Virus record (IMG/VR): IMGVR_UViG_3300042868_005134
Span: 186,001 to 250,000 of that record
Direction: 5' to 3' (one strand)
Length of the DNA: 64,000 bases
A program made the position numbers and the translations under genes. This document shows, piece by piece, positions 28,971 to 56,515 of the stretch. Every line of letters begins with the position of its first letter. Position 1 is the stretch's first letter. The notes under the pieces are model-generated. The model was not told the DNA's origin and made no database searches. It saw only the letters and a list, made by a program, of their open reading frames with translations.

Positions 28971-29321
28971 GTGGACGAACGATTTCAAAAAGCCTTTGAA
29001 ACTGCCAATTATATGACAACATTGGCCAGTCAAAAGCAAATTCTTAAAGAAGAATTTTATCAAAATTTAATTCATTATCATAATGGCGGAATCTTTACCG
29101 CATCGCGTGAGCTAATCAATTTTACCAAAACGCTAGTTGATATTGGTAACAATGAATCTACAGTACTGGTAGATAATAACGAATTACCTGTTGACATTGT
29201 TGATCTCTCTAAATTTTTAGAGGAGTTGCTGTCAAAATATCATTTTGCCGTTAACGGGTATTATACAAGATACGATCAGATGAGAAAGAATAGAACTGTG
29301 GAAGGTATTCTCAGTGTATGA
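28971..29321 (+). CDS. Hypothetical protein, first gene of the glycosyltransferase operon
   Basis: GTG start with AGGAG SD; downstream of a sigma70 promoter; stop overlaps the next ATG. Confidence 0.7.
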   Translation: MDERFQKAFETANYMTTLASQKQILKEEFYQNLIHYHNGGIFTASRELINFTKTLVDIGNNESTVLVDNNELPVDIVDLSKFLEELLSKYHFAVNGYYTRYDQMRKNRTVEGILSV

Positions 29322-30142
29322 CACAGGGCGTTTTACTTTTCGCAAATAACAACAGCGAAATAGCATACACTGATTTAGCTATTTTTGCTGCACAGCAAAT
29401 AACAAAGTATCTAAATGTGCCAGTTAGTATTGTAACTGATAGCAAACCCAGCATTTCAAAAAACGTATTTGATAAAATTATAGAAATAACTGATAATTCT
29501 TCTTATACTAAAAGATTTCACGACGGCACTGACAGTAACAAAACGTTACATTGGAAAAATACATCCAGGTCTCGGTGCTACGAGCTTACTCCATACGATG
29601 AAACGCTGGTTATTGATGTTGATTATATAGTTAATTCGACAACTTTAAACTATTGTTGGAATCAGCCGCATGATTTTTTAATTTATTCCAAATATTGTGA
29701 TCTAGCACAATGGCGAAGTAGCGCAGAATTTGATCATGTAAGCGAATATTCAGTACCGTTCTATTGGGCCACTGTATTTTTCTTTAGAAAAACTGAACTT
29801 AATAAACAATTTTTTGATTTAATAACACATATTAAATTAAATTGGGTTTATTACAAGTTTGTATATCAAATTCAAAGTACAAATTTTAGAAATGATTATG
29901 CTTATAGCATAGCAATACACATGATGAATGGTTTCACAAATGGTGTATTTGCTAACCAACTACCTAGCAAGATGTTTTATACATTGGATACTGATTTTCT
30001 TATTGATATCGATGGCGACACCATGAAATTTCTTGTTGAAAAACAAAATACACCTGGTGAGTATACCGCTTTAAAAACTTCAGGATTAGACGTTCATGTT
30101 ATGAACAAGTATAGTTTGTTAAGGTGTGTTAACAATGAGTAA
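29318..30142 (+). CDS. Glycosyltransferase, GT-A fold (GT8-like)
   Basis: 'TPYDETLVIDVDYIV' DxD motif, 'WATVFFF', 'RNDYAYSIA', terminal 'HVMNK'. Confidence 0.7.
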   Translation: MTQGVLLFANNNSEIAYTDLAIFAAQQITKYLNVPVSIVTDSKPSISKNVFDKIIEITDNSSYTKRFHDGTDSNKTLHWKNTSRSRCYELTPYDETLVIDVDYIVNSTTLNYCWNQPHDFLIYSKYCDLAQWRSSAEFDHVSEYSVPFYWATVFFFRKTELNKQFFDLITHIKLNWVYYKFVYQIQSTNFRNDYAYSIAIHMMNGFTNGVFANQLPSKMFYTLDTDFLIDIDGDTMKFLVEKQNTPGEYTALKTSGLDVHVMNKYSLLRCVNNE

Positions 30143-30968
30143 AGGTCATGTATTTTTAGCACAAAATTCCACAGTCGACTATGTTAGACAAGCCTGTGCT
30201 TTAGCTTTAAGTATTAAAAAACATAATAAACAACACAATCAAACTTGTGTTATTACCAATGACGATATTCCTGAAGAATACAAACACGCATTTGATTATA
30301 TAGTTCCTATTCCATGGACTGATATAGCAAAAGATTCTGTATGGAAAATAGAAAATAGATGGAAAATTATTCATGCTACTCCATTCAAGGAGAATATTGT
30401 CTATGATACTGATATGATATTGCTAAACTCCAACGATCATTGGTGGCCACATTTATCCAAGCATGAACTATTGTTTACATCCACAGTTACTGATTATAGA
30501 AACAACATTGTAACAAGTGATTTTTATCGTAAAACTTTTACAGCAAATGCGTTACCTAACTTGTATGTTGGAGCATTTTATTTTAGAAAAACAAATAAAT
30601 CCTATGAGTTTTTTAAATGGCTCGACTTGCTAACTGCCAATTGGAAAACTTTTTATCAAAAATTTTTATCAACACAGCCACAAAAATTTTGTAGCATGGA
30701 TGTAAATGCTGCCCTTGCTGTAAAATTTATGGATTGCGAATCGCAAGTTTTAGTTAACAAAACTTTTATACCCGGCTTTACACACATGAAGCCCGCATTA
30801 CAAGGGTGGAATAATGTACCCGCAAAATGGACAAGTGTGTTACCTAGTTATTTCTCGGATGATTGCCAGTTAAAAGTTGGTAACGTACAACAACAAGGTT
30901 TATTCCATTATGTAGAGGATGAATTTTTAACCGAAGACATACTACATAAGTTGTCTAGACAAACATGA
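30135..30968 (+). CDS. Glycosyltransferase, GT-A fold (paralog of the previous gene)
   Basis: 'TPFKENIVYDTDMIL' DxD motif, 'FTHMKP', 'FHYVE'. ATG at 30135 preferred over the GTG at 30126. Confidence 0.7.
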   Translation: MSKGHVFLAQNSTVDYVRQACALALSIKKHNKQHNQTCVITNDDIPEEYKHAFDYIVPIPWTDIAKDSVWKIENRWKIIHATPFKENIVYDTDMILLNSNDHWWPHLSKHELLFTSTVTDYRNNIVTSDFYRKTFTANALPNLYVGAFYFRKTNKSYEFFKWLDLLTANWKTFYQKFLSTQPQKFCSMDVNAALAVKFMDCESQVLVNKTFIPGFTHMKPALQGWNNVPAKWTSVLPSYFSDDCQLKVGNVQQQGLFHYVEDEFLTEDILHKLSRQT

Positions 30969-31513
30969 CAGTAATTAACAAAATGTATGTACAATACGAT
31001 GATACAGGTCGAGTACACTACGTTAACAATTTTCAAGATCCTGTACTTAAGAATTTCGAAATTGATCTAGAATTAATTTTAGACTTTTTATCGGATGGCA
31101 ATAAAGACTGTAAGAAATATAAAATTAATTATTTTTTCAATCTAAGTAAGGGTGTTGTTGAACACGAATCCGAACAACAAGATATACAAACTCCGTTTCC
31201 TGTTGTAATGTCTAGGACAACTTCTTATCAAAACGAGATTACATTAGATCATAATCTACTAGAATCTAAATGGACAATTCATGTTAGACCAGACCTAACA
31301 GATCAGTTAGCAATAAGTTCTGATTTTGTATTTTTTATTTGTAAGAAAGATGACCCGCATTATCTGTATTCTACTCTAGTTGTTCAACCAGATAATCTTA
31401 AAACTGGCAAGTTTGATTTGTTTTTTATTCATGATCATGAAAAAGACATAAACAATATAAGTGTTGTGCCGATTCGATCGTTTAAATCGTACGGGCTAAA
31501 GGAAATTAAATGA
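30965..31513 (+). CDS. Hypothetical protein
   Basis: 182-aa ORF with ATGA overlaps on both sides. Confidence 0.7.
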   Translation: MTVINKMYVQYDDTGRVHYVNNFQDPVLKNFEIDLELILDFLSDGNKDCKKYKINYFFNLSKGVVEHESEQQDIQTPFPVVMSRTTSYQNEITLDHNLLESKWTIHVRPDLTDQLAISSDFVFFICKKDDPHYLYSTLVVQPDNLKTGKFDLFFIHDHEKDINNISVVPIRSFKSYGLKEIK

Positions 31514-32427
31514 GTCAAAAATTTAAAGTTATGGACTGCGATATTGTATATTTGAGCTATGACGAACCAAATGCCGAAGAAAATTACGCAGACTTACTGA
31601 CCAAAGTGCCATGGGCAAAACGTGTACATGGTGTAGAAGGTAGTGATGCCGCACATAAAGCCTGTGCTAGGCTAAGTGAAACAGATCGATTAATAGTTGT
31701 AGATGGCGACAACAAAATTCGTCCCGAGTTTCTTAAACAAGAAGTTGAATTTAAAGATGAAGTTGAACTTGATAAAAGTGTTATTAGTTGGGGAGCACAA
31801 AATGTCATCAATGGATTGATTTACGGTAACGGCGGCATCAAATGTTGGCCTACTCAGTTAGTACTTGACATGAAAACACACGAAGCAGCTGAAAGTGACA
31901 ATTCCAAGACACAAGTAGATTTTTGTTGGGATATCAATTACATACAGATGGAACAATGTATGAGCGATGTATATAACAACGCTAATGCCCAACAGGCCTG
32001 GCGAGCTGGATTCCGTGAAGGTGTTAAAATGGGTTTGCTCGAAGGGTCAAAAGCAGACAATATTGTAAAACAAGTACACTGGAAAAATTTTCAAAGACTG
32101 TTAGTATGGATGCATGTTGGAATGGATGTTAAGAATGGTGAATGGGCAATCTATGGCGCCAGACAAGGTTGCTATATGACCAATTGTACTGACTGGGATT
32201 TCGTCAATGTTAGAGACTTTAAATGGTTAAATTCCTATTGGACAGAACATGACAGTAAAACAACTGACAAGATGTTACCATTTGAAATTATGGGTATCGG
32301 CGAAACACTTAAACATGAACTAGATATGTCTATGGCTGATCCATTCACCAGTGAGCAAAGTACACTATTTAAATCGTTGTATACCAATCCACCACGTATG
32401 AAAAACACATTTATTGTGGGATCATAA
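31510..32427 (+). CDS. Glycosyltransferase, GT-A fold (GT2-like)
   Basis: 'DIVYLSYDEPNA', 'KRVHGVEG..AAH', 'VVDGDN' DxD motif, 'YGNGGIK', 'AWRAGFRE'. Confidence 0.65.
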   Translation: MSQKFKVMDCDIVYLSYDEPNAEENYADLLTKVPWAKRVHGVEGSDAAHKACARLSETDRLIVVDGDNKIRPEFLKQEVEFKDEVELDKSVISWGAQNVINGLIYGNGGIKCWPTQLVLDMKTHEAAESDNSKTQVDFCWDINYIQMEQCMSDVYNNANAQQAWRAGFREGVKMGLLEGSKADNIVKQVHWKNFQRLLVWMHVGMDVKNGEWAIYGARQGCYMTNCTDWDFVNVRDFKWLNSYWTEHDSKTTDKMLPFEIMGIGETLKHELDMSMADPFTSEQSTLFKSLYTNPPRMKNTFIVGS

Positions 32428-33101
32428 TGTACGATATTGTATTCATAAGTTATCAAGAACCCAATGCTGACAGCAATTGGAAGTTGCTAAACCGTAGATT
32501 TCCATTTGCTAGACGTGTACACGGAGTAAAAGGTATACATCAAGCGCACATCGCCGCCGCAAAAAAGTGTTTCACTGACATGCTGTGGGTAGTTGACGGC
32601 GACGCAGTGGTGCTTGACTCATTCAACTTTGATTATGTACCACAAGATCCTGAATATGTATTTGTTTGGCGAAGTAAAAATCCCGTAAATGACTTAGAGT
32701 ACGGCAACGGTGGAATAAAATTGTTGCCCAGGCTAATGACATTAAATATGGATACTAGCAAACCTGATATGACAACTAGTATTAGTACTAAATTTAAACC
32801 TGTAAAAATAGTCAGTAACATAACGACATTTAACACCGATCCATTTAACACTTGGAAAAGCGCATTTAGAGAATGCTCTAAATTGTCAAGTACTGTTATC
32901 GACAGGCAAAAGCAAGACGAAACAGCAGACAGATTACATATATGGTGTACGAAAGGTATCGGTAGACCTTACGGTGATTGCGCTATTGCTGGCGCCCTAG
33001 CAGGTAAAGCATATGGTGACGCTAACAAAAATAATTTAGAAGCACTGAAGAAGATTAATGACTTTGAGTGGTTGGATAGAAAATTTAAGGAAACTTTATG
33101 A
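32427..33101 (+). CDS. Glycosyltransferase, GT-A fold (paralog of the previous gene)
   Basis: 'DIVFISYQEPNA', 'RRVHGVKGIHQAH', 'VVDGDA', 'YGNGGIK', 'WKSAFRE'. Confidence 0.65.
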   Translation: MYDIVFISYQEPNADSNWKLLNRRFPFARRVHGVKGIHQAHIAAAKKCFTDMLWVVDGDAVVLDSFNFDYVPQDPEYVFVWRSKNPVNDLEYGNGGIKLLPRLMTLNMDTSKPDMTTSISTKFKPVKIVSNITTFNTDPFNTWKSAFRECSKLSSTVIDRQKQDETADRLHIWCTKGIGRPYGDCAIAGALAGKAYGDANKNNLEALKKINDFEWLDRKFKETL

Positions 33102-34033
33102 GTGAAAAGCAAAGCAGTACTATCGAGTGGTTGTATGGACTAGAAGATTATTTTAATTTTTCTAACAACACAGAAGCTGCGGATTATATTAGAAATATTA
33201 TTACTATATTTTATGCAGACAATCCAGCAGCAGCATTAAAGAAATTATGTGTTAGCGCATTTGAATCTATCGATGACACTGAACAGTTTGCTAAGGTTGT
33301 CAACTTATATTTTACGGCACTAGACAAGAATTTTTCATTGCTAGAGCTTGCAAGTAATGCTAGAATCTTATTTCCTAAAGAAAAAATATTTAATGCTATT
33401 CATATGTACAGTCGTAATAATTCTAATATAGAAACATTAAACGATGCGCTGAGCAAGAGTCAAATTAAAAGTAAAATTTGGTTAGTAGAAGAACTAGCTA
33501 AGATAAAAACTAACTACGATAATGTAGCAGTTATGGCTGGATGGTACGGACAAATAAAATCAATTTATGACAAAAGGTTAACTTATGCTAAAATGAGAAT
33601 TATTGAATTGGATAAATCTGCGTGTGAAACTAGCGATTATATTTTTAATTTAAGCAATTTAGAAAATTATAAAGTTAAGTCAGTTAATGCCGATATCAAC
33701 AATCTTACACTACACAAAAATGGTTATGAGTGGGACGTTGAAAATTTTAAAGAAGGTTCTAAATATACGGAGAAATTTTTACCTGATTTAATCATCAATA
33801 CCAGTGCCGAGCACATGACCGAAGAATGGTTTCATCAAATTAGATTTAAAGAATTGGAAAGCAATCCCGTTGTGGCAATACAAAGTAATAATATGTTTGA
33901 CGGAGAAGGACATGTTAATTGTGTTCATAGTATTGACCATATGAAGAAAAAGTTTCTCATGAAGGAAATTTTGTTTGAAGGTGAGCTACAGCTTAAGGGA
34001 TATAAGCGTGTTATGCTTATAGGACGTCCATGA
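33098..34033 (+). CDS. Class I SAM-dependent methyltransferase-like protein
   Basis: C-terminal Rossmann-like pattern: 'VAVMAGWYG' (motif I), 'IIELD' (acidic motif II), 'NADI', 'DLIINTSAEHM'. Confidence 0.6.
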   Translation: MSEKQSSTIEWLYGLEDYFNFSNNTEAADYIRNIITIFYADNPAAALKKLCVSAFESIDDTEQFAKVVNLYFTALDKNFSLLELASNARILFPKEKIFNAIHMYSRNNSNIETLNDALSKSQIKSKIWLVEELAKIKTNYDNVAVMAGWYGQIKSIYDKRLTYAKMRIIELDKSACETSDYIFNLSNLENYKVKSVNADINNLTLHKNGYEWDVENFKEGSKYTEKFLPDLIINTSAEHMTEEWFHQIRFKELESNPVVAIQSNNMFDGEGHVNCVHSIDHMKKKFLMKEILFEGELQLKGYKRVMLIGRP

Positions 34034-34257
34034 TAGATTTAGAAACATTCGAATTACGTAAACTACAAACAGAAGCTGCTCGCGCATTGTCTTCGATGGA
34101 AGCAACTAATGACAATATATACAAATTTAACCAAGTTGCTAGACATGACAGTCATTTATGGTATAAAGCTGTAATTAATTGGTATATAGAACAACATGGG
34201 GGCCTCCCAAGCGAGATAGGTCCAGGCTCAACAGTTAAAATGGTAACAACACAATGA
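34030..34257 (+). CDS. Small hypothetical protein (75 aa)
   Basis: SD AGGA; ATGA overlaps with both the methyltransferase and the first radical SAM gene. Confidence 0.7.
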   Translation: MIDLETFELRKLQTEAARALSSMEATNDNIYKFNQVARHDSHLWYKAVINWYIEQHGGLPSEIGPGSTVKMVTTQ

Positions 34258-35417: not shown

Positions 35418-35418
35418 T

Positions 35419-36369
35419 TTAAATTATTATTTTTTTAGATATATTAGTTTCTAAGGCACAGCTACACCACGCCTGTTTACAAACTACTGGTGTTTTCGAT
35501 AATCCTTTAAAATCTTTTAAAGTTCCTAAATTCTGCCCTTGACTACAACTAGCGCCAGTTATGTCTCCAAAAAAAGAAATATATAAACAATCTGCTCCAA
35601 TATTACAAGTCCAGTTAAAAAACTTGTTTAATCTATTGTTAAGCAAATACTGATCGTCAAGAGGTTCTTCTTGTCCATTATCGTATTTTATAAATGTTTG
35701 TCCAAATCCCCGACCTTGACTTAGATTGAATGGAAACGCTTTATTTACAGGTGTTTCTTTTTCGAACCATGCCAGCTGTTGTTCTGTGTACTCGTAGCTA
35801 GTATCTTGTTCTAATTGATCTTTCTTAAATACTCTAGTAAATCCAGTATGTGCCATACTGTCCATGATTTTAAATTTATTGTATACTTCGACGCACTTAT
35901 CCCATAACGGTGGCCACATTAATACAAATACTCCAGCATTGGTAACTTTGCCAATAGCATCCATTTTTTCAAATATATCTGTATTATCCCATTCTGGATG
36001 ATAGCTCAATGTAACTTTGTACAATTTTGGAGCATATTCTTGCCACCAGGCTAAACTCCGTGTACCGTTTGTGTTAACATGGCAGTGCCAATTATATTCG
36101 TTAAACTTGTCGCACAAGAATTCAAAGTGCGGAGAAATAGTAGGTTCTCCGCCGTTTAAAAATATATGTACTGGTCTATCTTTAACTTCTTCTTTTAGCT
36201 TAGATAAGAAATTTTCTAGTATCGCACGATCTTCTACCTTGTTGATTATAGTGTTAGTGCCTCGATGTAGTAAATCAGGACAATAGGTACAGTGATATGT
36301 ACAAATACTGTTCAAAGTCCAATTAATTACAAGTACATTATTCTTGTCATAGATTTCTATAGGTTTCAT
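35419..36369 (-). CDS. Radical SAM enzyme (type D)
   Basis: CTYHCTYC; 'GGEPT'; 'NTNG'; C-terminal Cys cluster 'WTC..G...I...G.I..ASC...C....CSC'. Confidence 0.9.
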   Translation of the reverse strand: MKPIEIYDKNNVLVINWTLNSICTYHCTYCPDLLHRGTNTIINKVEDRAILENFLSKLKEEVKDRPVHIFLNGGEPTISPHFEFLCDKFNEYNWHCHVNTNGTRSLAWWQEYAPKLYKVTLSYHPEWDNTDIFEKMDAIGKVTNAGVFVLMWPPLWDKCVEVYNKFKIMDSMAHTGFTRVFKKDQLEQDTSYEYTEQQLAWFEKETPVNKAFPFNLSQGRGFGQTFIKYDNGQEEPLDDQYLLNNRLNKFFNWTCNIGADCLYISFFGDITGASCSQGQNLGTLKDFKGLSKTPVVCKQAWCSCALETNISKKIII

Positions 36370-36377
36370 ATTACGTC

Positions 36378-36397
36378 TATTTATCTAGCCATAAATA
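36378..36397. promoter_or_regulatory. Divergent pair of late-like promoters
   Basis: TATTTAT (36378-36384) and ATAAATA (36391-36397) between divergent radical SAM genes. Confidence 0.65.
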
Positions 36398-36401
36398 TCT
36401 C

Positions 36402-37682: not shown

Positions 37683-37686
37683 CTAG

Positions 37687-38232
37687 ATGAAAATACTTAT
37701 TACTGGAAATCCAAATTTTGGCTTAGCATCTGAATTGTTTAAGCTATACCCTGACGCAACATTCATATCGAGAGAAAGTGGATATGATTTAACCACCCGA
37801 GAAGGTTATCGTAAACTAGGTGAGATAGTCGCAGAATACGATATTTTTATCAATTCAAGTGCGTTATGGAAATTTAATCAAACGCTAGTACTTGATGCTG
37901 TATATAAAAAATGTGTAGAGATCAAACACAATATGCGAATCATTTGTATAGGTAGCACTACAGATAGAGTTAAGAAAGCAACATCGTGGATTTATAACGC
38001 TGAGAAAAAAGCACTACGTGATTATTCAAATAGTTTAAGTTTAACAGGTGTGTGGGATTCAGGCCCAACAGTCTCGCTAATCAGTTTTGGCAGTTTGTCT
38101 AATGTACAAGAAAAACACCCAGGCCGTGTTTGTTTAGAACTATCACGTGCCGCATCTTATATTAAATGGTTGATTGACCAGCCTTCGGATATATGTATTA
38201 ATGAAATCAGTATTGACCCTTTACAACATTAA
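37687..38232 (+). CDS. Short-chain dehydrogenase/reductase (SDR)
   Basis: 'KILITG...GL' Rossmann start, 'FINSSA', 'IGS', catalytic YxxxK ('YNAEK'). Confidence 0.75.
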   Translation: MKILITGNPNFGLASELFKLYPDATFISRESGYDLTTREGYRKLGEIVAEYDIFINSSALWKFNQTLVLDAVYKKCVEIKHNMRIICIGSTTDRVKKATSWIYNAEKKALRDYSNSLSLTGVWDSGPTVSLISFGSLSNVQEKHPGRVCLELSRAASYIKWLIDQPSDICINEISIDPLQH

Positions 38233-40658: not shown

Positions 40659-40659
40659 G

Positions 40660-41916: not shown

Positions 41917-41920
41917 GAAA

Positions 41921-41950
41921 TATTTATCGATAAAATACAGCGGTTAAATA
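41921..41950. promoter_or_regulatory. Divergent pair of late-like promoters
   Basis: TATTTAT (41921-41927) and TAAATA (41945-41950), each 4 nt from its ATG. Confidence 0.65.
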
Positions 41951-41954
41951 TAGT

Positions 41955-48902: not shown

Positions 48903-48906
48903 AAAT

Positions 48907-50226
48907 ATGGAAGATTGGAAAAATACGTATTGTTCTAAATCCTGGACTGATGTTAATGTAGACTTTTCAAGCGAGTTTGTTAAAAATTGCTGTAAATCGA
49001 AGCCTATTAAATTTGTACCTAATTTAGATAAAACTTTCTTTGAGTTCTCTCCAGAGTTACTTAAACGCAAGACTGATAGCTTACAAGGAGTACAAAATGA
49101 AGATTGTCATTTTTGTTGGAAAGAAGAAGGTAAGCGTGTAACTTATAGAGATGTACATAATAAATGGACACCTGAATTTATAGAATTAAATCGTGATAAC
49201 TTATTATCTACTGATAAATCATTTGCGAATTATATTGAAGTTAAGTTCTCCAATACTTGCGATATGGCTTGTTTATATTGCGGCCCTAATTTTAGTAGTA
49301 AAATAGCCATAGAAGAAAAAGTTCGAATTAAAAGTGTGCCGTTAGCATCTGAATTTGAAGCTTTTAAAGAATTTTCAGATCCGCTAATTAAAAATGCAGT
49401 TGAAATTAATAGAGAATCTATTGATAATAGTGTGTGGGATAATACACAATTACGATTTGTATTCTTAGGAGGCGAACCCACGTTGATAGATCAATTTTAT
49501 GATTTTATTGAACATATTGTATCTAGAGTTGAACATCATGCTCAACTAGCAAACTGGAAGCACAAAATGAAAAATATCCGTCTTGAAATTGTCACTAATG
49601 GTAATACTACCCCGGCATTAATGGACAAGTTTTTTAAATTATTATACAGTACAAATTTTGAATGGACAATTGGGATAAGTAACGAATCTTTTGGGCATGA
49701 TGCTGAATTGATCAGACATGGGTTAAATTGGGAACGATTTCAAACTAATTTTAAAAAATATATTTCTGTTCCTAAAAAAATTGACAGCATTAATTTAGCA
49801 CCAACTCTTAATATTTTTAGTTTAAAAACATTTCATCTCTACATGGCATGGGTACATGAGCAATTCGATAATCAGTTAAAATTAACAGGTGTTTGTCCAG
49901 CTTTTACATGGCACGGCAATTTTGTAACAGATCCGGTATTAGACATTAAAGTATTGCCAGTTGAATATAGAAAGTACATTGATCTTGCCATTGAAGTTGC
50001 TGAACGTGAAAATAATCCTAAATTTAAGAATAAAAAAAGTACAATTAAATTTTTAAATCAGATGAAAGATAGGATTGGCACAACTGATCCTGAATCAGAT
50101 GATGCTGTATGGTATAGAGAACGAGCGAGAGATTGGCTTGTGATGAAAGAAAAAAAGAAAGGAGTTAGTAATCTAACACCTTTACTATTGAATATCGAAT
50201 ATCATGATTATAAAAGGTATCTGTAA
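48907..50226 (+). CDS. Radical SAM enzyme (type B-like)
   Basis: 'YCSKSW...NCCK...DCHFC'; core CDMACLYC; 'GGEPT'; 'VTNG'. Confidence 0.88.
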   Translation: MEDWKNTYCSKSWTDVNVDFSSEFVKNCCKSKPIKFVPNLDKTFFEFSPELLKRKTDSLQGVQNEDCHFCWKEEGKRVTYRDVHNKWTPEFIELNRDNLLSTDKSFANYIEVKFSNTCDMACLYCGPNFSSKIAIEEKVRIKSVPLASEFEAFKEFSDPLIKNAVEINRESIDNSVWDNTQLRFVFLGGEPTLIDQFYDFIEHIVSRVEHHAQLANWKHKMKNIRLEIVTNGNTTPALMDKFFKLLYSTNFEWTIGISNESFGHDAELIRHGLNWERFQTNFKKYISVPKKIDSINLAPTLNIFSLKTFHLYMAWVHEQFDNQLKLTGVCPAFTWHGNFVTDPVLDIKVLPVEYRKYIDLAIEVAERENNPKFKNKKSTIKFLNQMKDRIGTTDPESDDAVWYRERARDWLVMKEKKKGVSNLTPLLLNIEYHDYKRYL

Positions 50227-51398
50227 TGAGCGATGATTTATCTTGGTCAGCCTACGACTTTACAAAAATTCCATACAATGATATTCAACGTGTGGGTCAA
50301 CGCACAATGTTATATCGTGACTTGTTTACAGTAAGTTGGCTGTTAGGCCGGTTCTGTAATTATCGATGTAGCTACTGCTGGCCCTATGCTCGCAGTGATA
50401 AAAAAGATCATAGACCTACAGAGTTATGTCTGCTTACGGTAGATGAGATTAAACGTCAAGCTAGAGAGCGAGGATTTAATAGTTTTCACTTTAGTCTAAG
50501 TGGCGGCGAACCAACATTTCATCCAGGCTATATTGATATCCTAAATCATCTTAATAACGACGCAGGGAATACAAACTATACCAGTGTACACATGACAACA
50601 AATATGAGTCGCAGTTTACGTTGGTTTGAAGATGAGTATTGTCCTGCTGTAAGTAAGTTTCACAGAGCTAGTATCACTGCCAGTCTACATACCGAACATG
50701 TAGACACACCAGAGAAAATGCAAGACTTTGCTGACAAATTAATATTGTGTCAAAAACACGATGTTCAAATAACTATCAATATGGTTATGGTTCCTGAATG
50801 GTTCGAACGTGACTTTGAAAATGCATTGTTCTTTCACAATCAGGGAATTAATGTAACACTAAAACCTCAGAGTGATCCTACTGCTAGCCGTGTAGTAGAT
50901 GGGTATACTCCTGAAATGTTAAAACGATTACACAATGGAATGCCACAACGTGCCTTCACAGAGAATAAAGCAGATGAAGCTAAATTAGTCAAACGCCCAA
51001 CTCCTACATTTAGAAAAGTTCCTGATCCATTGTACAAAGAAGAAAACGCAAAAATTCCACAACATTTCCAAGTAGAATTTGTTGATAGCAATAAAAAAAT
51101 CTGGTATATGGATCAAGCTGAACGATTCAATGCGTTCAACTTTAATAAGTTTAAAGGCTGGGAATGTTCCAGTGGATATCGTAGTATTATTATACGTGAA
51201 CCAGATGGCAGCATAAAACGCAGTTATAGCTGTAGTGATGTTCCGTTAGGTAATGTAGAAACTGGCTTTAAATTGTTTGACGGTCCAACGCCGTGTATAA
51301 GTGATAGCTGTGTTAGCAGTGCTGACAGTAAGATTCCAAAAAGATCGCCTGGAACTCATTTACCATTGTGGCCAGGCGATACTACTTATCTTGCTTGA
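50226..51398 (+). CDS. Radical SAM enzyme (type D)
   Basis: CNYRCSYC; 'SGGEPT'; C-terminal 'FKGWECSSG...DG...SYSC...PC...SC'. Confidence 0.9.
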   Translation: MSDDLSWSAYDFTKIPYNDIQRVGQRTMLYRDLFTVSWLLGRFCNYRCSYCWPYARSDKKDHRPTELCLLTVDEIKRQARERGFNSFHFSLSGGEPTFHPGYIDILNHLNNDAGNTNYTSVHMTTNMSRSLRWFEDEYCPAVSKFHRASITASLHTEHVDTPEKMQDFADKLILCQKHDVQITINMVMVPEWFERDFENALFFHNQGINVTLKPQSDPTASRVVDGYTPEMLKRLHNGMPQRAFTENKADEAKLVKRPTPTFRKVPDPLYKEENAKIPQHFQVEFVDSNKKIWYMDQAERFNAFNFNKFKGWECSSGYRSIIIREPDGSIKRSYSCSDVPLGNVETGFKLFDGPTPCISDSCVSSADSKIPKRSPGTHLPLWPGDTTYLA

Positions 51399-52726
51399 TG
51401 TAGACATTCTAAATATAATTTTTTTGTGTCTAGCATAAGATATCTGTTGTAATTATACATTATAATTTCTTTCCAAGAATCATATAACTTTTGCTTTTCC
51501 TCCAATGGAAGATTAGCGATTGCCTTTACTTTGTCAATTACGTATTCTAATTCGTCAAAATAATGCCTTTCATTATTGCTCGGTAATTCGAGACCAGGAT
51601 ATTCTTTAAATCCTAGTGATTTTAAAATATTTTTAATTTTATGACCGCCCAAGGTAATGAAAGGTACTCCTGACAAGATTGCCATTGAAGTTTTTTCTGT
51701 CAACATTGACGGAGTGCAATCAAAATCTTCACCGCTAATAATGGAACAAGTTTCTAGCACTATATGAAACATTGAATTTATTTCAAATGGTATCCCTGCT
51801 ATATCTTTTCTTAAATGATCTTTAGAACCGTGATCTATAAATTTTAAGGTATTTAAATTTTCTAGCTTGGTGTGTATAAAACTTAATTGTTTTTGATACT
51901 TGTGAATAATTCCTGTATTTTTACAGTCTTCTACAAACGAATCTTTTGCAGGCAATAATCTACTGTATTGACCAAAATCAGTTATCTTTTCTTTGTCTGC
52001 CCACAATTGGAATAATGTCCTAGTTAGTCTCGGTGTCCTGCAAAACGATTGCCATACTAATGTATCTTGTGTTAGTACTCTATTTCTAATTTCTTCAAAT
52101 AATGCTTCTTTTTTAGATTTCGCATTCGAATATAAATCAGAATCAATATATGCTTTATGAAAAAACGCTCCTGGAAACATGCAGTGATCTACCTGTATGT
52201 TTCTTGACCTATTAGACATATAGTTATTAACAAGTTCGCCACCTACAACATAAAATTTAAGATTTTTAATTCCTCTAAAGAAATGATTTTTAGCAGTTAA
52301 GTAATTAACATACTCGGTTTCAAATAATTTGTAAGATCTAATATAGACATTATCCATTTCGGCAGAGCCGTCGATTATTATAGGAATTTTATTTTCAACT
52401 AAGAAATCTGTCACATCTGGATCTACAGCAAAAAAATCTGTTAAATGAAAAGTCTTAACATGTAACCAAGCTGAAATAAAATAAAATACATCGACATTTT
52501 TATCAATTGTACCGTTATTCTTTACCTCAGCAATAAATTCACCAGCTTTTCTAAAAGTAATAAAATCTGAAGAGCAATTATACAATGTCCTAGGAGTTTC
52601 TGAAATCCAGCCAAATTGGTAGCCTTCTGTAACTAACTTGGCAATCAATTTTTCGTATACTCTTTCTAGTAAAGTTACAACTTTTCCATCTACGATATCG
52701 TCAACTAAAAATATTGCTTTTTTCAT
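51386..52726 (-). CDS. Putative glycosyltransferase, GT10 (fucosyltransferase)-like C-terminus
   Basis: 'FHIVLET...LTEKT..AI..G.PFI..G' resembles the GT10 donor-binding motif (F.L.FEN...Y.TEK...A...G.VPI); coupled by an ATGA overlap to gmd. Confidence 0.45.
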   Translation of the reverse strand: MKKAIFLVDDIVDGKVVTLLERVYEKLIAKLVTEGYQFGWISETPRTLYNCSSDFITFRKAGEFIAEVKNNGTIDKNVDVFYFISAWLHVKTFHLTDFFAVDPDVTDFLVENKIPIIIDGSAEMDNVYIRSYKLFETEYVNYLTAKNHFFRGIKNLKFYVVGGELVNNYMSNRSRNIQVDHCMFPGAFFHKAYIDSDLYSNAKSKKEALFEEIRNRVLTQDTLVWQSFCRTPRLTRTLFQLWADKEKITDFGQYSRLLPAKDSFVEDCKNTGIIHKYQKQLSFIHTKLENLNTLKFIDHGSKDHLRKDIAGIPFEINSMFHIVLETCSIISGEDFDCTPSMLTEKTSMAILSGVPFITLGGHKIKNILKSLGFKEYPGLELPSNNERHYFDELEYVIDKVKAIANLPLEEKQKLYDSWKEIIMYNYNRYLMLDTKKLYLECLHQAR

Positions 52727-53721
52727 CTTGCGTTAGGATTTGTCTTATAAAAATCCATCCAGTAATCTACCATCTCATCTAACATAGATTCAAAGGTATA
52801 TGTTGGTACCCACCCAAGTGTTGTTCTAGCTTTGGATGAATCACCTTTTAAATAATGTAACTCTTCGGGTCGTTTAAATTTTTCATCGGAAAATACGTAT
52901 TTTGTTCGATCCAGTTCTAATTTTTCAAATACATAGTTAACTAAGTCATTAACTGTTTTTGTCACACCAGTCGCAATTACATAATCATCACTTTTTTCTT
53001 GTTGTAGCATTAACCACATAGATTCTACAAAATCTTTAGAATGACCCCAATCCCTTGCTGCTTCAAAATTACCTAAAATTAATTTTTTAGATTTACCTAA
53101 TTTAATTTTGACAGCCTCTAATACAACTTTGTTGGTTACAAAATTAATACCACGTCTTGGGCTTTCGTGATTAAACAAAATTCCAGAACATATAAACATG
53201 TTGTACGCATTTCTATAATTATGACATAGACTATGTGCGTATAGCTTGCTACAACCATATGGCGATACAGGTATTAATGGAGTGGTTTCTCGTTGAAACC
53301 CGTCAGAGTCACACGAGTTTCCAAACATTTCCGATGTTGCTGCATGGTAAACTTTTGAATGATTGGAAAATTTTCTAACAGCTTCAAGTACTGACAATGT
53401 TCCGCCAGCATTCACATCGAGTGTATACTTTGGTAATTCAAAGCTAATCTGTACATGACTTTGTGCGCCAATGTGATAAATTTCATCTGCCTGTACATTG
53501 CTTATTACACTTTCTACACTTAGCGGATCGGTAAGATCCATGTATTTCAACTGAATACGGTTGTCCTTGAACAAATGCTCTATGCGAGTAGTTTGAGATT
53601 CAGGCACAGAGTTACGTCTTACTGTGCCTGCCACTTTGTAATTTTTAGAGACTAATAGTTCGGCAAGGTAAGAGGCATCTTGTCCATTTGCTCCAATAAT
53701 TAATGCTGTTTTTTGAGTCAT
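52723..53721 (-). CDS. gmd: GDP-mannose 4,6-dehydratase
   Basis: 'GANGQDASYLAE', 'AQSHVQISF', 'TSEMFG', 'SPYGCSK', 'NHESPRRG.NFVT.K', 'RDWGH'. Confidence 0.95.
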   Translation of the reverse strand: MTQKTALIIGANGQDASYLAELLVSKNYKVAGTVRRNSVPESQTTRIEHLFKDNRIQLKYMDLTDPLSVESVISNVQADEIYHIGAQSHVQISFELPKYTLDVNAGGTLSVLEAVRKFSNHSKVYHAATSEMFGNSCDSDGFQRETTPLIPVSPYGCSKLYAHSLCHNYRNAYNMFICSGILFNHESPRRGINFVTNKVVLEAVKIKLGKSKKLILGNFEAARDWGHSKDFVESMWLMLQQEKSDDYVIATGVTKTVNDLVNYVFEKLELDRTKYVFSDEKFKRPEELHYLKGDSSKARTTLGWVPTYTFESMLDEMVDYWMDFYKTNPNAR

Positions 53722-53722
53722 A

Positions 53723-54877
53723 TTATTCCTGATTTATAATCGAAGCAATAACTTCGATGTCTTCCTTAACTAGTCCTTGATGATTAGGAACATAAAAACC
53801 TTGTTTATCAATAATATCGGCATTTGGTAAATCTGTCAAACGTCCGTATCGTTTGATCCAGAAAGGTTTGTTTGCCATATTGCCAGCAATTAAGGGACGA
53901 GTTTCAATATTGTTTTGTTTAAGTTTTTCTATAATTTTATTTCTATTGGGCAATACAACAGGGTATGCGAAATTTGAAACAAAGTCGTTATCTCGTTGCG
54001 CAAGTAATAATTTGTTATTGTTAATTAGTTCTTTATAAATTAAAAAGTTTTTGTTACGTATCCGACTGTACTTATCCAACTTGTCAACTGCTCCAAGTCC
54101 AATGAACGCCTGTAAATCTGTTGATCTAACATTGAGTCCCGGTACGTAAAATGTATATAATGCTTCAAAGTCAGTTACATTGGCTTGCTTTCTTAATTCT
54201 TGTTGTTTACTTGTTGGCAAATCTCTATCCCATCCATGACTACGCATCATTAGTAATCCGTGATAAAATTCTTCATTATCAGTATTAATAAACCCGCCTT
54301 CGATGGTGCTTAAATGATGACCAAAGTAAGTGGAGAACAGCGACGCAATACCAAATGATCCTAAATACTTTCCTTGATATTTAGAACCCATTGATTCGCA
54401 ATTATCTTCTACTAATAGAACTCCGTATTCTTCGCACAAGTGTACTATTCTTTGTATATCTGGTACTAATCCTAATGGAGTTACCAAAATGAATACAGAT
54501 GGTTCAAACTCTTTAAAAATAGTTTCTAAGTGGGCAAGGTCGCACGATAGGTCAACTAAATTACAGTCACATAGACGTGTTTCAAAATTTAACAGCATAG
54601 GGGAACTTACATCGGTAGACCAACTCAGTGCCGGAGCAACTAATCGATTATTCTTTAAGAAACCAAACTCTTTTAATACTGCTAACGAAAGTAAAATAGC
54701 TGACGAGCCTGAGTTGACAAATACAGAATATTTTGTTCCTATCTTCTTTGCCCATTTGCGTTCTAACTCAATTGTTAATTCGCCTTTGGTTAATCGAGGA
54801 ATCGTATCCTGCGATAGCCATTCTACAAGTTTAGCAATGTCAGATTTATCAATAGTATCACTGACCAAATTTATCAT
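53723..54877 (-). CDS. colD: GDP-4-keto-6-deoxy-D-mannose 3-dehydratase (ColD-like; DegT/DnrJ PLP family)
   Basis: 'VNSGSSA.LL', 'EDNCESMG', 'STYFGHHLSTIEGG' with His at the position of the usual PLP-binding Lys, 'RSHGWDR', 'PG.NVR'; lies between gmd and an fcl-like gene. Confidence 0.75.
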   Translation of the reverse strand: MINLVSDTIDKSDIAKLVEWLSQDTIPRLTKGELTIELERKWAKKIGTKYSVFVNSGSSAILLSLAVLKEFGFLKNNRLVAPALSWSTDVSSPMLLNFETRLCDCNLVDLSCDLAHLETIFKEFEPSVFILVTPLGLVPDIQRIVHLCEEYGVLLVEDNCESMGSKYQGKYLGSFGIASLFSTYFGHHLSTIEGGFINTDNEEFYHGLLMMRSHGWDRDLPTSKQQELRKQANVTDFEALYTFYVPGLNVRSTDLQAFIGLGAVDKLDKYSRIRNKNFLIYKELINNNKLLLAQRDNDFVSNFAYPVVLPNRNKIIEKLKQNNIETRPLIAGNMANKPFWIKRYGRLTDLPNADIIDKQGFYVPNHQGLVKEDIEVIASIINQE

Positions 54878-55754
54878 ACGTTTTCCTTATGCCATCTCGT
54901 AAGGTAGTTAAACCAAACTCTGGAAATATTTTTGTTAACTTACTTATACTAACATCTTTTCGAAGTTGTCCATTAGGCATAGTTGTATCCCAGTTTATTG
55001 ATAGATGAGTAGCATCACATACATCTAACGCAATTTCAGCAATTTCTTTTATAGTTAATGTTTCGTTTGTGGCAACATTAAAACTTTCAGTAATATTATT
55101 ATCTATTACAAATTTAATAACATTACAAAAATCATCAACATGCATAAATTGTCTTAACGGTGTACCATCTCCGAATAAAGTAATAGAGTTATCATTATTT
55201 TGTTTAGCTTGCCATATCTTTTTAATTAAGGCTGTTACAAAATGACTGTTATTGCCATGCTTGTCTCCTTCTCCAAAAAGATTACACGGAATAAGATAGC
55301 TATATTGTGTGTTGTATTGTGTATTGTACGCATCAATTTGTACTCCTAAACATCGCTTTGCATAACCGTATGAAAAATTAGTAGGAGTAGGCGGCCCTAA
55401 ATGTAGCATGTTTTCGTCGAGTGGGTATGTCTCAACTACATCCGGATAAATGCAAGTGCTTAATACTCCAATGAATTTCTTTACATTATACGCATGGGCG
55501 TATTTTACTAATAATGTATTCATCAGTATATTTTCAGTAAAGTACGGTGCTGGATTATTAATGTTATCAATGATTCCGCCAACTTTAGCGGCAAGGTGAA
55601 TAATACAATCTGGTTCTAATTCTTTATACATGTTGATTACATGTTGTTCGCAAGTTAAGTCATAATCTGCCGATGACAAATATATTGCGTCTGAAATATA
55701 TTTTTTTAAATTGGCACCGACTAATCCACTTCCGCCAGTTACAACTATTTTCAT
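54858..55754 (-). CDS. GDP-4-keto-6-deoxysugar epimerase/reductase (Fcl/ColC family)
   Basis: 'TGGSGLVG', 'HLAAKVGGI', 'STCIYP', YxxxK 'YGYAKR', 'P.NL.G', 'GDGTPLRQF.H'. True start probably the ATG at 55754, which overlaps the upstream stop. Confidence 0.9.
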   Translation of the reverse strand: MKIVVTGGSGLVGANLKKYISDAIYLSSADYDLTCEQHVINMYKELEPDCIIHLAAKVGGIIDNINNPAPYFTENILMNTLLVKYAHAYNVKKFIGVLSTCIYPDVVETYPLDENMLHLGPPTPTNFSYGYAKRCLGVQIDAYNTQYNTQYSYLIPCNLFGEGDKHGNNSHFVTALIKKIWQAKQNNDNSITLFGDGTPLRQFMHVDDFCNVIKFVIDNNITESFNVATNETLTIKEIAEIALDVCDATHLSINWDTTMPNGQLRKDVSISKLTKIFPEFGLTTLRDGIRKTYDKFGQ

Positions 55755-56515
55755 TGTTTTCTCTCTATATCTTCTTCTATACATTCTGTACCGTATTGTA
55801 TTTCCACAATACGACAAACCGCTTCGAACGGATTATGTATTTTATGCCAATTGCCCAAAGGTATTACTACCTGAGAATGTTGTGTTAATGTTAGCATAGG
55901 CAATGCGTAGCCGCTCGTCAACTGCTGTTCTAATACGCATTGTCCTTCAGCAACGTGCCAAAATTCGTGACGTTTTAAATGCCGTTGCATGCTTAATGAT
56001 TGTCCCGGTTCTATAGTAAGCTCTTTTACTTTACAACCGTTTACATCATATAGTACTTGATAGTAACCCCATGTACGTGATGTTTTAATAGATTTCCATT
56101 CTTCCAATATCCAACTACTTGAATTTTTCTTTGTGTTTCCGCCAACTCCAAATACAAACTCTAGTTTATCGTCTACTAAGTCCATTTCATGTATATTTTC
56201 TTTTGTACGGTCTCCACCGTTGGCAAAAATAATAGTAGCATCGGGGTACATAGCTCTAACACCTGTGATAGTGTTTTTACTACTACCGTCGGCATCAGGG
56301 TAACAAACCACTTTATCTACAACTTTAAGAGATTCAATGATGCGGCAACGTTCGTATTCTTCCATAAAGGCCTGACCCTTTTTACGAACTAACCAATCAT
56401 CTGTATTAATACCAACAATCAGCATGTCACCTAGTTTACTAGCTGCTTCAAAGTACTCAATATGCCCAGAATGAAGGGGGTCGAAACCCCCTGTTACAAG
56501 TACGATTCTTTTCAT
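55751..56515 (-). CDS. Nucleotidyltransferase (HxGH) fused to a mannose-6-phosphate isomerase type II-like cupin
   Basis: N-terminal 'TGGFDPLHSGH...RKKG...ANGGDR'; C-terminal 'RTWGYY...KVKEL.I.PG.SLSMQRH..R.E.W.V...EIQYG..C.EEDIER'. Confidence 0.85.
   Translation of the reverse strand: MKRIVLVTGGFDPLHSGHIEYFEAASKLGDMLIVGINTDDWLVRKKGQAFMEEYERCRIIESLKVVDKVVCYPDADGSSKNTITGVRAMYPDATIIFANGGDRTKENIHEMDLVDDKLEFVFGVGGNTKKNSSSWILEEWKSIKTSRTWGYYQVLYDVNGCKVKELTIEPGQSLSMQRHLKRHEFWHVAEGQCVLEQQLTSGYALPMLTLTQHSQVVIPLGNWHKIHNPFEAVCRIVEIQYGTECIEEDIERKQ

Follow-up and report, generated by a model that had tools for sequence, protein, structure and literature searches.

Why does a giant phage carry, directly beside its tail-fibre genes, a block of about 27.5 kb that encodes almost exclusively enzymes, among them sugar-transferring and radical-SAM enzymes? 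We addressed this question for a 64,000-nucleotide stretch (hereafter the window) of the IMG/VR record IMGVR_UViG_3300042868_005134, where the initial annotation had described such a block and interpreted it as one system that builds and tailors a glycan on virion proteins, or alternatively on the host surface or on DNA. The phage is a jumbo myovirus of at least 383 kb from lake water, related to PA5oct, RaK2, SCTP-2 and Atu_ph07. The described block proved to be real, whereas its interpretation is supported only in part: a single system and a sugar-based product are supported, the latter by context only, but a virion target is not shown.

Gene content and promoters of the enzyme island

Positions 28971-56515 of the window hold 28 tightly packed ORFs with 99.7% of the bases coding. 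The block has three layers: a translationally coupled chain of glycosyltransferase-like genes (GT chain) behind a conserved sigma-70-type promoter, a hypervariable radical-SAM array with four conserved anchor enzymes, and a strain-specific deoxysugar module. The parts, with ORFs named in the text by their first coordinate, are as follows.

28918..28970 (+), sigma-70-type promoter (TTGACA-17-TATACT, score 11/12), set in an 8-bp inverted repeat followed by a T-run; a TTGAC...TATAAT-like pair is kept in at least 9 of 13 orthologous upstream regions
28971..29321 (+), 116-aa protein without a family hit, first gene of the chain; orthologues in 15-17 loci and in phage RsoM2USA (33% identity)
29318..30142 (+), GT8-like GT-A protein, paralogue of 30126
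30126..30968 (+), GT8-like GT-A protein, 38% identical to RsoM2USA ORF352
30965..31513 (+), 182-aa protein without a family hit; a gene of the same size holds this position in relatives and in RsoM2USA
31510..32427 (+), GT2-type GT-A-like protein (DIVFISYxEPNA...VVDGD family), paralogue of 32427 (E 3e-29)
32427..33101 (+), GT2-type GT-A-like protein, a conserved core gene found in 54 of 80 loci; Bdellovibrionota homologues 38-41% identical
33098..34033 (+), class-I methyltransferase-like protein; Bdellovibrionota homologues 28-35% identical
34030..34257 (+), conserved, phage-specific 75-aa protein, three-helix bundle in the AF2 prediction; in 59-64 loci with 72% mean column identity
34254..35417 (+), radical-SAM enzyme, subfamily B (C-terminal Cys-rich), anchor gene; Pfam 34 bits; in 74 of 80 phage loci and 26 of 53 Bdellovibrionota loci
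35419..36369 (-), radical-SAM enzyme, subfamily C (short; N-terminal part resembles viperin/STM4011/QueE)
36370..36401, 32-nt divergent spacer with two back-to-back TAAATA boxes
36402..37679 (+), N-terminal-twitch (N-twitch) radical-SAM enzyme, NCBIfam NF033640 (232 bits, cut-off 170)
37687..38232 (+), conserved short SDR-like protein; in 20-21 phage loci and 9 Bdellovibrionota loci
38232..39545 (+), N-twitch radical-SAM enzyme, anchor gene (382 bits); in 37 phage loci and 23 Bdellovibrionota loci
39534..40658 (-), nitroreductase-like protein
40660..41916 (-), N-twitch radical-SAM enzyme (238 bits), 39% identical to 36402
41917..41954, 38-nt divergent spacer with two TAAATA boxes
41955..43358 (+), N-twitch radical-SAM enzyme, the most conserved anchor gene (424 bits); 73-100% identical in 164 viral loci and 56-62% in Bdellovibrionota
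43345..44172 (+), HxD...H protein, a putative Fe(II)/2OG-type oxygenase
44172..45236 (+), radical-SAM enzyme, subfamily B
45233..46300 (+), radical-SAM enzyme, subfamily B; its orthologue is fused to an N-twitch enzyme in L004 (L numbers denote related phage loci)
46297..47658 (+), N-twitch radical-SAM enzyme (311 bits)
47658..48902 (+), N-twitch radical-SAM enzyme (314.5 bits); Pfam SPASM matches residues 6-68, ahead of the radical-SAM core
48907..50226 (+), N-twitch-like radical-SAM enzyme, below the family cut-off (158 bits against 170)
50226..51398 (+), radical-SAM enzyme, subfamily C, anchor gene (Pfam 58 bits); 69-89% identical in 47 phage loci and 58-66% in Bdellovibrionota
51386..52726 (-), 446-aa protein of a virus-only family, a possible glycosyltransferase (weak lead)
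52723..53721 (-), GDP-mannose 4,6-dehydratase (Gmd; E 2.5e-108)
53723..54877 (-), ColD-type GDP-4-keto-6-deoxymannose 3-dehydratase
54858..55817 (-), GDP-fucose-synthase/ColC-like epimerase-reductase (E 1e-55)
55751..56515 (-), fusion of a cytidylyltransferase-like domain with a mannose-6-P-isomerase (PMI) cupin, first gene of the minus-strand operon

Twelve proteins carry a CxxxCxxC motif, as the initial annotation had stated, and each carries exactly one. Ten of them reach the Pfam Radical_SAM gathering score, and the other two, 36402 and 40660(-), pass NF033640. Seven of the twelve belong to, or sit just under the cut-off of, NF033640, an uncharacterised family with an N-terminal twitch Fe-S domain that comprises at least 7,000 clusters at 50% identity. 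The chain of overlapping stop and start codons from 28971 to 35417 is likewise real and has nine ORFs, including the 75-aa ORF, which the initial annotation had not listed. The deoxysugar module is a complete Gmd/ColD/ColC-type GDP-colitose module: the 3-dehydratase matches E. coli ColD at E 4e-56, against 2e-23 for perosamine synthase, and keeps the diagnostic His-His in place of the Lys.

Other assignments are weaker. The four GT-A-like proteins have no Pfam, PHROG or NCBIfam hit. A profile of 29318/30126 hits glycogenin (GT8) at E 0.004 with an invariant DxD, and an AF2 model of 32427 (pLDDT 91) matches in a Foldseek search the GT2-type GT-A folds of WrtF, RmlT, ppGalNAcT, SunS, GtrB and ArnC at E about 4e-4 and TM about 0.4. 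The methyltransferase-like protein is a lead from the atlas only, where neighbours and structural matches are class-I methyltransferases (TM 0.54-0.56), without a sequence hit in the PDB. The SDR-like protein shows TGxxxG and YxxxK motifs and weak HMM hits; a Bdellovibrionota neighbour family tied to it by distant similarity (24-25% identity) hits adh_short. The nitroreductase hit (Pfam E 3.9e-6) covers the C-terminal part only. The HxD...H assignment rests on motifs kept in six homologues, and in other loci the same slot holds a QueC-like PP-loop (SGGxDS) protein. The GT10-like assignment of 51386 is only an atlas lead with a score of 0.81, as searches of PDB, Pfam, NCBIfam and PHROGs returned no hit.

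The TAAATA boxes described by the initial annotation are real: 13 of 49 occurrences lie within 40 nt upstream of same-strand starts, against 0.8 expected, and they also precede baseplate and fibre genes. The T4 octamer TATAAATA occurs only once, against 11.7 expected, 10 nt upstream of the cytidylyltransferase-cupin gene. The genes upstream of the island encode baseplate, giant virion and fibre proteins and contain 18-25% Ser+Thr, against 12.5% in the enzymes.

Counterparts in related phages, Bdellovibrionota and RsoM2USA

Is this gene arrangement peculiar to one phage? The GT chain, the four anchor radical-SAM genes (34254, 38232, 41955 and 50226) and the SDR-like gene keep their order across dozens of phage loci, and the position beside tail genes is conserved. 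The remaining radical-SAM complement is hypervariable, with 4-13 such ORFs per 21-kb locus and 119 subfamilies at 40% identity in 80 loci. In some relatives (L012, L033 and L070) the two GT2-like proteins and the methyltransferase-like domain are fused into one polypeptide, and in others (L026 and L047) an N-twitch gene is inserted between the two GT2-like genes. QueC-like proteins, carbamoyltransferases and Asp/Asn beta-hydroxylase-like proteins occur as accessory families in relatives, and carbamoyltransferase-radical-SAM fusions exist in phages. The colitose module, by contrast, is a strain-specific accessory, seen only in the three 100%-identical contigs.

Here, we found two counterparts that are new. 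First, the anchor radical-SAM genes and the GT2-like and methyltransferase-like genes also lie together in chromosomes of predatory Bdellovibrio-like bacteria (Bdellovibrionota), which carry arrays of up to 12 radical-SAM ORFs with orthologues of 41955 (58-60%), 50226 (58-66%), 34254 (45%), 38232 (38-47%), 32427 (41%) and 33098 (28-35%). Their flanks hold GT2 genes (two families, each in 12 of 53 loci), in the one locus examined for it a PMT_2/ArnT-type GT-C gene, a carbamoyltransferase, QueC-like proteins and housekeeping genes, and MFS transporter genes recur near the arrays. The same accessory families recur in phage islands. Second, a minimal version sits beside the tail genes of the cultured Ralstonia jumbo phage RsoM2USA, next to the tail sheath gene and a virion protein identified by mass spectrometry; here, too, an N-twitch gene lies between the two GT2-like genes.

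Relation to described systems

The statement of the initial annotation that no characterised phage pathway has this composition holds, although the gene content had been noted before (PMC5332604, PMC7029224). Zaragoza-Solas et al. 2020 (PMC7029224) described the host recognition cluster of pelagimyophages and cyanomyophages, likewise a hypervariable island after the giant structural protein and fibre genes, with GT8-type glycosyltransferases and radical-SAM cassettes that differ between close relatives, and Nishimura et al. 2017 (PMC5332604) reported a T4-like marine viral genome with 12 radical-SAM genes. These papers only counted the genes; in the passages retrieved by term search, they did not report the conserved core, the N-twitch family or the Bdellovibrionota and RsoM2USA counterparts. 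The cultured pelagimyophage records gave no match to the anchor enzyme.

The twitch/SPASM enzymes BtrN, HygY, AprD4 and BlsE act on sugars and share with the island proteins a radical-SAM core with an auxiliary Fe-S domain and the occurrence in clusters with glycosyltransferases and NDP-sugar enzymes. Here, however, the auxiliary Cys-rich domain is N-terminal to the core (Pfam SPASM at residues 6-94, ahead of CxxxCxxC at 121-146), similarity to characterised enzymes is limited to the core (E 1e-8 at best, with a weak core match to BlsE), and seven to thirteen paralogues would work side by side.

In the virion glycosylation systems of mycobacteriophages and chloroviruses, glycosyltransferase genes also lie next to structural genes and the enzymes are soluble and cytoplasmic; the Ser/Thr-rich structural proteins next to the island fit this comparison. 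Those systems are not known to include radical-SAM enzymes or a hypervariable tailoring array, and for the present phage virion glycosylation is a hypothesis only. The Gtr-type and O-antigen seroconversion cassettes of temperate phages are also phage-borne sugar-modifying genes with strain-specific variation, but their defining membrane proteins (GtrA flippase, GtrB, GT-C) are absent from the island, and this phage has the gene content of a virulent jumbo phage. With the GDP-L-colitose pathway of E. coli O55 and Yersinia the module shares all three adjacent enzyme types; it differs in that the nucleotidyltransferase is a cytidylyltransferase-fold domain fused to a PMI cupin and not a ManC-type enzyme.

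Possible product and acceptor

Does the island encode one pathway? The conserved gene order, the fusions, the N-twitch insertions between the GT2-like genes and the co-occurrence of the same core in Bdellovibrionota support this view. A glycan is supported only by context, namely the GT-A-like proteins, the colitose module and the GT2 and GT-C neighbours in bacteria. In favour of a virion target are the conserved position beside tail genes, also in RsoM2USA, the soluble nature of all enzymes and the promoter boxes shared with structural genes. Against it, cells that have no virion carry the same core, and the GT chain has a host-type promoter rather than the box found before structural genes. 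The functional assignments remain remote: no activity or product is known for any NF033640 member, the closest solved structures match only the radical-SAM core, the glycosyltransferase similarities are weak, and a search for RNA data found none.

A possible, though less likely, alternative is a remodelling of the host envelope, in which the enzymes would make or alter a lipid-linked or LPS/lipid-A-type glycoconjugate of the infected cell, using host flippases and GT-C transferases, to block superinfection or change the surface. This is the published reading for the glycosyltransferases of the pelagimyophage host-recognition clusters (PMC7029224). It is in line with the GT2 and PMT_2/ArnT-type membrane transferases beside the bacterial core, with the conserved sigma-70-type promoter, which suggests host-RNAP and possibly early expression, and with the resemblance of the 32427 model to the polyprenyl-phosphate GT2s ArnC and GtrB. 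However, the island encodes no membrane protein, flippase, polymerase or GT-C, the TAAATA boxes on the radical-SAM units are shared with structural genes, and tight linkage to fibre genes is kept in very distant jumbo phages.

Somewhat more doubtful is a diffusible, sugar-containing secondary metabolite of aminoglycoside or nucleoside-antibiotic type, which would be made during infection and could act against competing phages or bacteria. The enzyme set (twitch radical-SAM, GTs, SDR, aminotransferase-type ColD, carbamoyltransferase, methyltransferase, nitroreductase) resembles such gene clusters, the MFS transporters near Bdellovibrionota arrays fit a small molecule, and so does an N-twitch gene beside a type I PKS in a cultured Rhodobacteraceae genome (Poseidonocella), which is, however, a single case. 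The island has no exporter or resistance gene, and the extreme cassette diversity and linkage to fibre genes fit a recognition surface better.

A RiPP-type modification, i.e. crosslinking or epimerisation of residues in a precursor peptide or in the fibre proteins themselves by the SPASM/twitch radical-SAM enzymes, is unlikely. It rests on weak sub-threshold hits to RiPP maturase models, of which no family cut-off is approached, and on the Asp/Asn beta-hydroxylase-like accessory genes. Neither phage nor bacterial loci hold a conserved precursor-like small ORF, the only conserved small protein is a uniformly conserved predicted three-helix bundle without a fold match and not an RRE or a leader-core peptide, and the GT and NDP-sugar context points elsewhere. 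Hypermodification of phage DNA bases by glycosylation and radical tailoring, to evade restriction, is very unlikely and has no support from the gene content, since, despite thyX and other small genes flanking the island, QueC-like proteins in relatives and the single radical-SAM enzymes that take part in thymidine hypermodification, the island holds no hydroxymethylase, DNA kinase, DpdA/TGT-type or base-J-type enzyme, FolE and QueD are absent, and the bacterial counterparts sit with GT2 and GT-C envelope enzymes and not with restriction genes.

In summary, what our analysis establishes is the gene inventory, the conserved core (two GT8-like, two GT2-like, one methyltransferase-like, one 75-aa and one SDR-like protein and the four anchor radical-SAM enzymes), its hypervariable complement of further radical-SAM and tailoring enzymes and the strain-specific GDP-L-colitose supply module; all that concerns the activities, the product and the acceptor is inference. 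The best reading, in which we place moderate confidence, is one modular, soluble, cytoplasmic pathway that builds a sugar-based product and diversifies it by radical chemistry. Of the acceptors, which we rank by inference only, tail-fibre or virion proteins are slightly and tentatively favoured over a host envelope glycoconjugate, followed by a free small molecule. In this view, the GT-A enzymes would assemble an oligosaccharide from nucleotide sugars, here including GDP-colitose, and the methyltransferase, SDR, oxygenase and nitroreductase-like proteins, and in relatives the QueC-like amidating enzymes, carbamoyltransferases and Asp/Asn-hydroxylase-like enzymes, would decorate it. We speculate that each radical-SAM paralogue abstracts a hydrogen from a defined sugar carbon, whereupon the N-terminal or C-terminal auxiliary cluster would complete an epimerisation, oxidation, deoxygenation or C-C bond-forming step, as the twitch enzymes BtrN, HygY, AprD4 and BlsE do on sugars, and that the swapping of cassettes would give strain-specific structures, as in O-antigen loci.

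Composition of the enzyme block

We found 28 ORFs in the block at window positions 28971-56515, of which 99.7% is coding. Upstream lie a baseplate wedge gene, a 4,651-aa virion protein and several fibre-like proteins, and downstream lies thyX. The 4,651-aa protein is encoded by a single ORF (4031-17986) and matches a PHROG virion structural protein and proteins of PA5oct-like jumbo phages (about 28% identity over 1,200 aa). The structural genes are most like those of the jumbo myoviruses PA5oct, RaK2, SCTP-2, Atu_ph07 and Phosso, at 25-44% identity. We considered whether one of the three 100%-identical viral contigs, with 383 kb, could be a dimer of a 190-kb genome, but a test 40-mer occurs in it only once; the genome is therefore truly jumbo. 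A megablast of 18 kb against 50,697 phage records found nothing, so no cultured phage matches at the DNA level, while at least 24 lake-water metagenome runs hold near-identical DNA. The best matches to the thyX product (56523-57203, minus strand) are from phages of freshwater Betaproteobacteria and Methylophilales (60-65% identity). A freshwater betaproteobacterial host is possible, but Bdellovibrionota cannot be excluded.

Twelve proteins of the block carry exactly one CxxxCxxC, the motif that binds the SAM-cleaving 4Fe-4S cluster. Ten of them reach the gathering threshold of the Pfam Radical SAM superfamily (PF04055, 29.5 bits); of the other two, 36402 scores 19.8 bits and 40660 has no Pfam hit, but both pass NCBIfam NF033640, 'twitch domain-containing radical SAM protein', whose full-length cut-off is 170 bits. 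An all-against-all comparison splits the twelve into three old subfamilies, 20-39% identical within each. Proteins are named here by the lower window coordinate of their ORF.

Radical-SAM proteins of the block, by subfamily
36402 (+): N-terminal Cys-rich (N-twitch) type, 232 bits to NF033640
38232 (+): N-twitch type, 382 bits
40660 (-): N-twitch type, 238 bits
41955 (+): N-twitch type, 424 bits
46297 (+): N-twitch type, 311 bits
47658 (+): N-twitch type, 314.5 bits
48907 (+): N-terminal Cys-rich type, 158 bits, just below the NF033640 cut-off
34254 (+): 34254 type (subfamily B)
44172 (+): 34254 type
45233 (+): 34254 type
35419 (-): short type
50226 (+): short type

In the seven N-terminal Cys-rich paralogues, which are divergent and offered no conserved stretch for a genome scan, C9, C27, C90 and C93 ahead of the core are invariant, as are C146/C150/C153 and the GGE motif. 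Pfam places a SPASM match ahead of the radical-SAM core. No solved structure matches beyond the core. A profile of the seven finds 7,064 clusters at 50% identity with E at or below 1e-30, many of them tandem fusions, and the hundred nearest atlas clusters are 95-100% viral in the rows displayed. Literature searches for a characterised N-twitch enzyme or for a Bdellovibrio radical-SAM array found nothing relevant.

The seven ORFs from 28971 to 34033 gave no hit in Pfam, NCBIfam or PHROGs, and their assignments, like those of several tailoring proteins, rest on remote similarity or on motifs.

Further plus- and minus-strand proteins of the block
29318 and 30126 (+): GT8-like; a profile of both and their orthologues hits glycogenin (GT8) weakly, at E 0.004 over 100 residues; D100 and D102 of the DxD motif are invariant in this family
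31510 and 32427 (+): GT2-like paralogues; D57 is kept in at least 90% and D59 is invariant (VVDGD) in this family
33098 (+): resembles class-I methyltransferases
37687 (+): SDR motifs
39534 (-): nitroreductase-like C-terminal part
43345 (+): HxD...H, kept among its homologues

A confident model of 32427 matches GT2-type GT-A folds in Foldseek, with a probability of about 1.0 but a TM of only about 0.4. Profiles of the GT2-like family, of the methyltransferase-like family and of the family of the 75-aa ORF found no meaningful PDB sequence match. The 75-aa protein is a predicted three-helix bundle, for which the fold search gave only generic helical bundles, so it is not an RRE or a carrier protein.

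The minus-strand operon running from 56515 to 51386 holds a GDP-L-colitose set: a ColC/Fcl-like reductase, a ColD-type dehydratase with the diagnostic His in place of the PLP-binding Lys, and Gmd. It is headed by an unusual fusion (55751-56515, minus strand) of a cytidylyltransferase-fold nucleotidyltransferase domain, not the NTP_transferase fold, with a mannose-6-phosphate-isomerase (PMI) cupin, in place of a ManC-type GDP-mannose pyrophosphorylase. The operon also encodes a virus-only protein (51386, minus strand), which the initial annotation called GT10-like; since it has no PDB match, this remains a weak lead.

No island protein has a membrane-spanning segment. The highest 19-residue hydropathy of any of them is 1.55, and no membrane flippase, polyprenyl-phosphate GT or GT-C transferase family, as would be expected of a Gtr-type or O-antigen seroconversion cassette, was hit. 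Likewise, Pfam and NCBIfam searches found no dNMP hydroxymethylase, DpdA/TGT or DNA kinase in the cluster, and only thyX lies outside the block.

Promoter motifs

The nine ORFs from 28971 to 35417, which form the GT chain, overlap stop-to-start and are preceded by a sigma-70-type promoter, TTGACA-17-TATACT, whose two hexamers recur in most orthologous upstream regions. This promoter (28918-28970) lies inside an 8-bp inverted repeat (CTCCTAGG...CCTAGGAG) followed by six T and may double as a long-loop terminator for the fibre operon; similar arrangements of a hairpin and a T-run are visible in relatives.

A second signal, a TAAATA box, is strongly enriched just upstream of starts, with 13 occurrences observed against 0.8 expected, and precedes baseplate and fibre genes, five radical-SAM-unit genes and the sugar operon. 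In the enzyme units (36392, 37677, 41921 on the minus strand, 41945, and 56520 on the minus strand) it sits exactly 10 nt before the ATG with no Shine-Dalgarno sequence, which implies, from the sequence alone, leaderless or near-leaderless transcripts. Two intergenic spacers of 32 and 38 nt hold divergent box pairs. The T4 late octamer TATAAATA itself is strongly depleted in the window, with one occurrence against 11.7 expected from shuffles, even though the shorter box is used. Calling the box 'late', as the initial annotation did, is an inference from its presence before structural genes, and the promoter data of PA5oct give only sigma-70-type motifs and do not settle its class.

Counterparts in phages and in Bdellovibrionota chromosomes

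Is the block conserved in other phages? The anchor enzyme 41955 is 73-100% identical in 164 viral loci and has thousands of metagenomic homologues. Locus maps show fixed anchors in the order fibre-like genes, 28971, two GT8-like genes, two GT2-like genes, the methyltransferase-like gene, the 75-aa ORF, 34254, then 41955, 38232, 37687 and 50226, and finally thyX, while between the anchors the enzyme set changes from locus to locus. Fibre genes lie directly upstream here, in the related phage loci L012 and L078, and in the cultured Ralstonia jumbo phage RsoM2USA. Full 21-kb loci hold 4-13 radical-SAM ORFs, with a median of 9, and the 80 loci contain 119 radical-SAM clusters at 40% identity. Accessory families include QueC-like PP-loop proteins, Asp/Asn hydroxylase-like proteins, nitroreductase, carbamoyltransferase, CMP-sugar-type cytidylyltransferase, AMP-binding enzymes and AsnB-like proteins. 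The colitose module, in contrast, appears only in the three identical contigs. Fusions link the two GT2-like domains with the methyltransferase-like domain. Two radical-SAM enzymes can also be fused in one polypeptide of about 800 aa (L004, a related phage locus, 11382-13817, and many database matches), either a subfamily-B enzyme with an N-twitch enzyme or two N-twitch units, and such tandem fusions are common among the best database matches.

RsoM2USA carries a mini-version just downstream of its tail sheath gene and a virion protein identified by mass spectrometry. It holds, in this order, an epimerase-fold gene, a fibre-like gene, homologues of 28971, 29318, 30126 and 31510, an N-twitch radical-SAM gene (ORF349, 316 bits to NF033640) and homologues of 32427 and 33098, all of which are annotated as hypothetical. 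ORF202 of this phage also passes NF033640, as do the Bdellovibrionota orthologues. This mini-cluster in a cultured phage makes the question of function accessible at the bench.

A scan of one genome per species found 235 relatives, overwhelmingly in Bdellovibrionota and including complete chromosomes. Loci such as L091 and L099 carry 8-11 radical-SAM ORFs with orthologues of 41955, 50226, 34254, 38232, 32427 and 33098, and in 53 such loci the four anchors (34254, 38232, 41955 and 50226) are each present in 20-26. On a Bdellovibrionales chromosome (OZ220490.1, locus L113, 4638-12575) six N-twitch radical-SAM genes stand head to tail in an array that continues on both sides and is as dense as the phage one. 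Recurrent neighbours in Bdellovibrionota are GT2 glycosyltransferases, a PMT_2/ArnT-type GT-C, QueC-like proteins, a carbamoyltransferase, an Asp/Asn hydroxylase-like protein, an SDR-like protein and an MFS transporter; housekeeping genes are also present, which shows that the loci are chromosomal. A search for precursor-like small ORFs shared by phage and bacterial loci found none. A different genomic context was seen in Poseidonocella sedimentorum (L153, 10001-20183), where a single N-twitch radical-SAM gene lies about 1.9 kb from a 2,317-aa type I polyketide synthase.

Contigs binned into MAGs of Bacteroidota, Planctomycetota, Actinomycetota, Chloroflexota, Verrucomicrobiota and Pseudomonadota (L081-L084, L104 and L106-L109) carry the phage-type anchor gene, in L104 and L106 with the mapped phage gene order, and, except L104, which was not in the tree, fall inside the phage clade. 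They are probably mis-binned phage DNA. We also tested whether the phage clade is nested inside Bdellovibrionota. The free tree puts all phage sequences in one clade beside Bacteriovoracaceae (support 90/94), but the AU test does not reject Bdellovibrionota monophyly (p 0.447), so that neither a donor nor a direction of transfer can be named.

Interpretation and significance

The enzyme-rich block seen by the initial annotation is indeed present. Its proposal of one system that builds and tailors a glycan on virion proteins is only partly supported: the block is one system and its context is carbohydrate chemistry, but the virion is one of several candidate acceptors. The gene inventory, the conserved core, the variable enzyme complement and the strain-specific colitose module follow directly from our analysis, whereas the enzymatic activities, the sugar-based product, any glycan on virion proteins and the timing of expression are inferred. 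The cassette diversity resembles that of surface-antigen loci.

A virion acceptor is suggested by the linkage to tail genes, the soluble enzymes and the promoter boxes shared with structural genes. The host envelope is suggested by the bacterial counterpart with its membrane glycosyltransferases and by the host-type promoter of the GT chain, and a small molecule by the polyketide synthase neighbour in Poseidonocella and the MFS genes. A RiPP reading lacks its defining parts, as we found no conserved precursor-like ORF and no RRE/PqqD-like element and all RiPP maturase models scored far below their cut-offs, and the DNA-modification reading lacks any base-activating enzyme.

We speculate, as an unlikely possibility, that the array is a combinatorial radical-chemistry diversifier. 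In this view, a conserved GT/radical-SAM core would lay down a scaffold glycan on the phage's own tail fibres, and interchangeable N-terminal-twitch radical-SAM cassettes (over 100 subfamilies) would then rewrite individual sugar carbons, giving virions strain-specific 'serotypes' that shape host range or evasion of defences. The toolkit would be shared with, or borrowed from, predatory Bdellovibrionota, which also attack Gram-negative cells from outside.

Two papers had already noted radical-SAM gene counts or cassettes in marine T4-like phages (PMC5332604, PMC7029224). In the passages and searches we used, we found no mention of the conserved core, of the identity and size of the N-twitch family, of the counterparts in Bdellovibrionota and RsoM2USA, or of the three-layer architecture of GT chain, variable radical-SAM array and deoxysugar module.

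In summary, twelve radical-SAM genes in 17 kb appears to be an exceptional density for a virus. The dominant family, with an auxiliary Fe-S domain placed before the core, has no characterised member, yet comprises at least 7,000 clusters at 50% identity, and nearly all of the nearest ones are viral. The link to Bdellovibrionota chromosomes shows that the system is cellular as well as viral. If each paralogue performs a distinct reaction on a sugar, this is a large untapped reservoir of carbohydrate radical chemistry, and it would also be a new way for phages to diversify a recognition surface.
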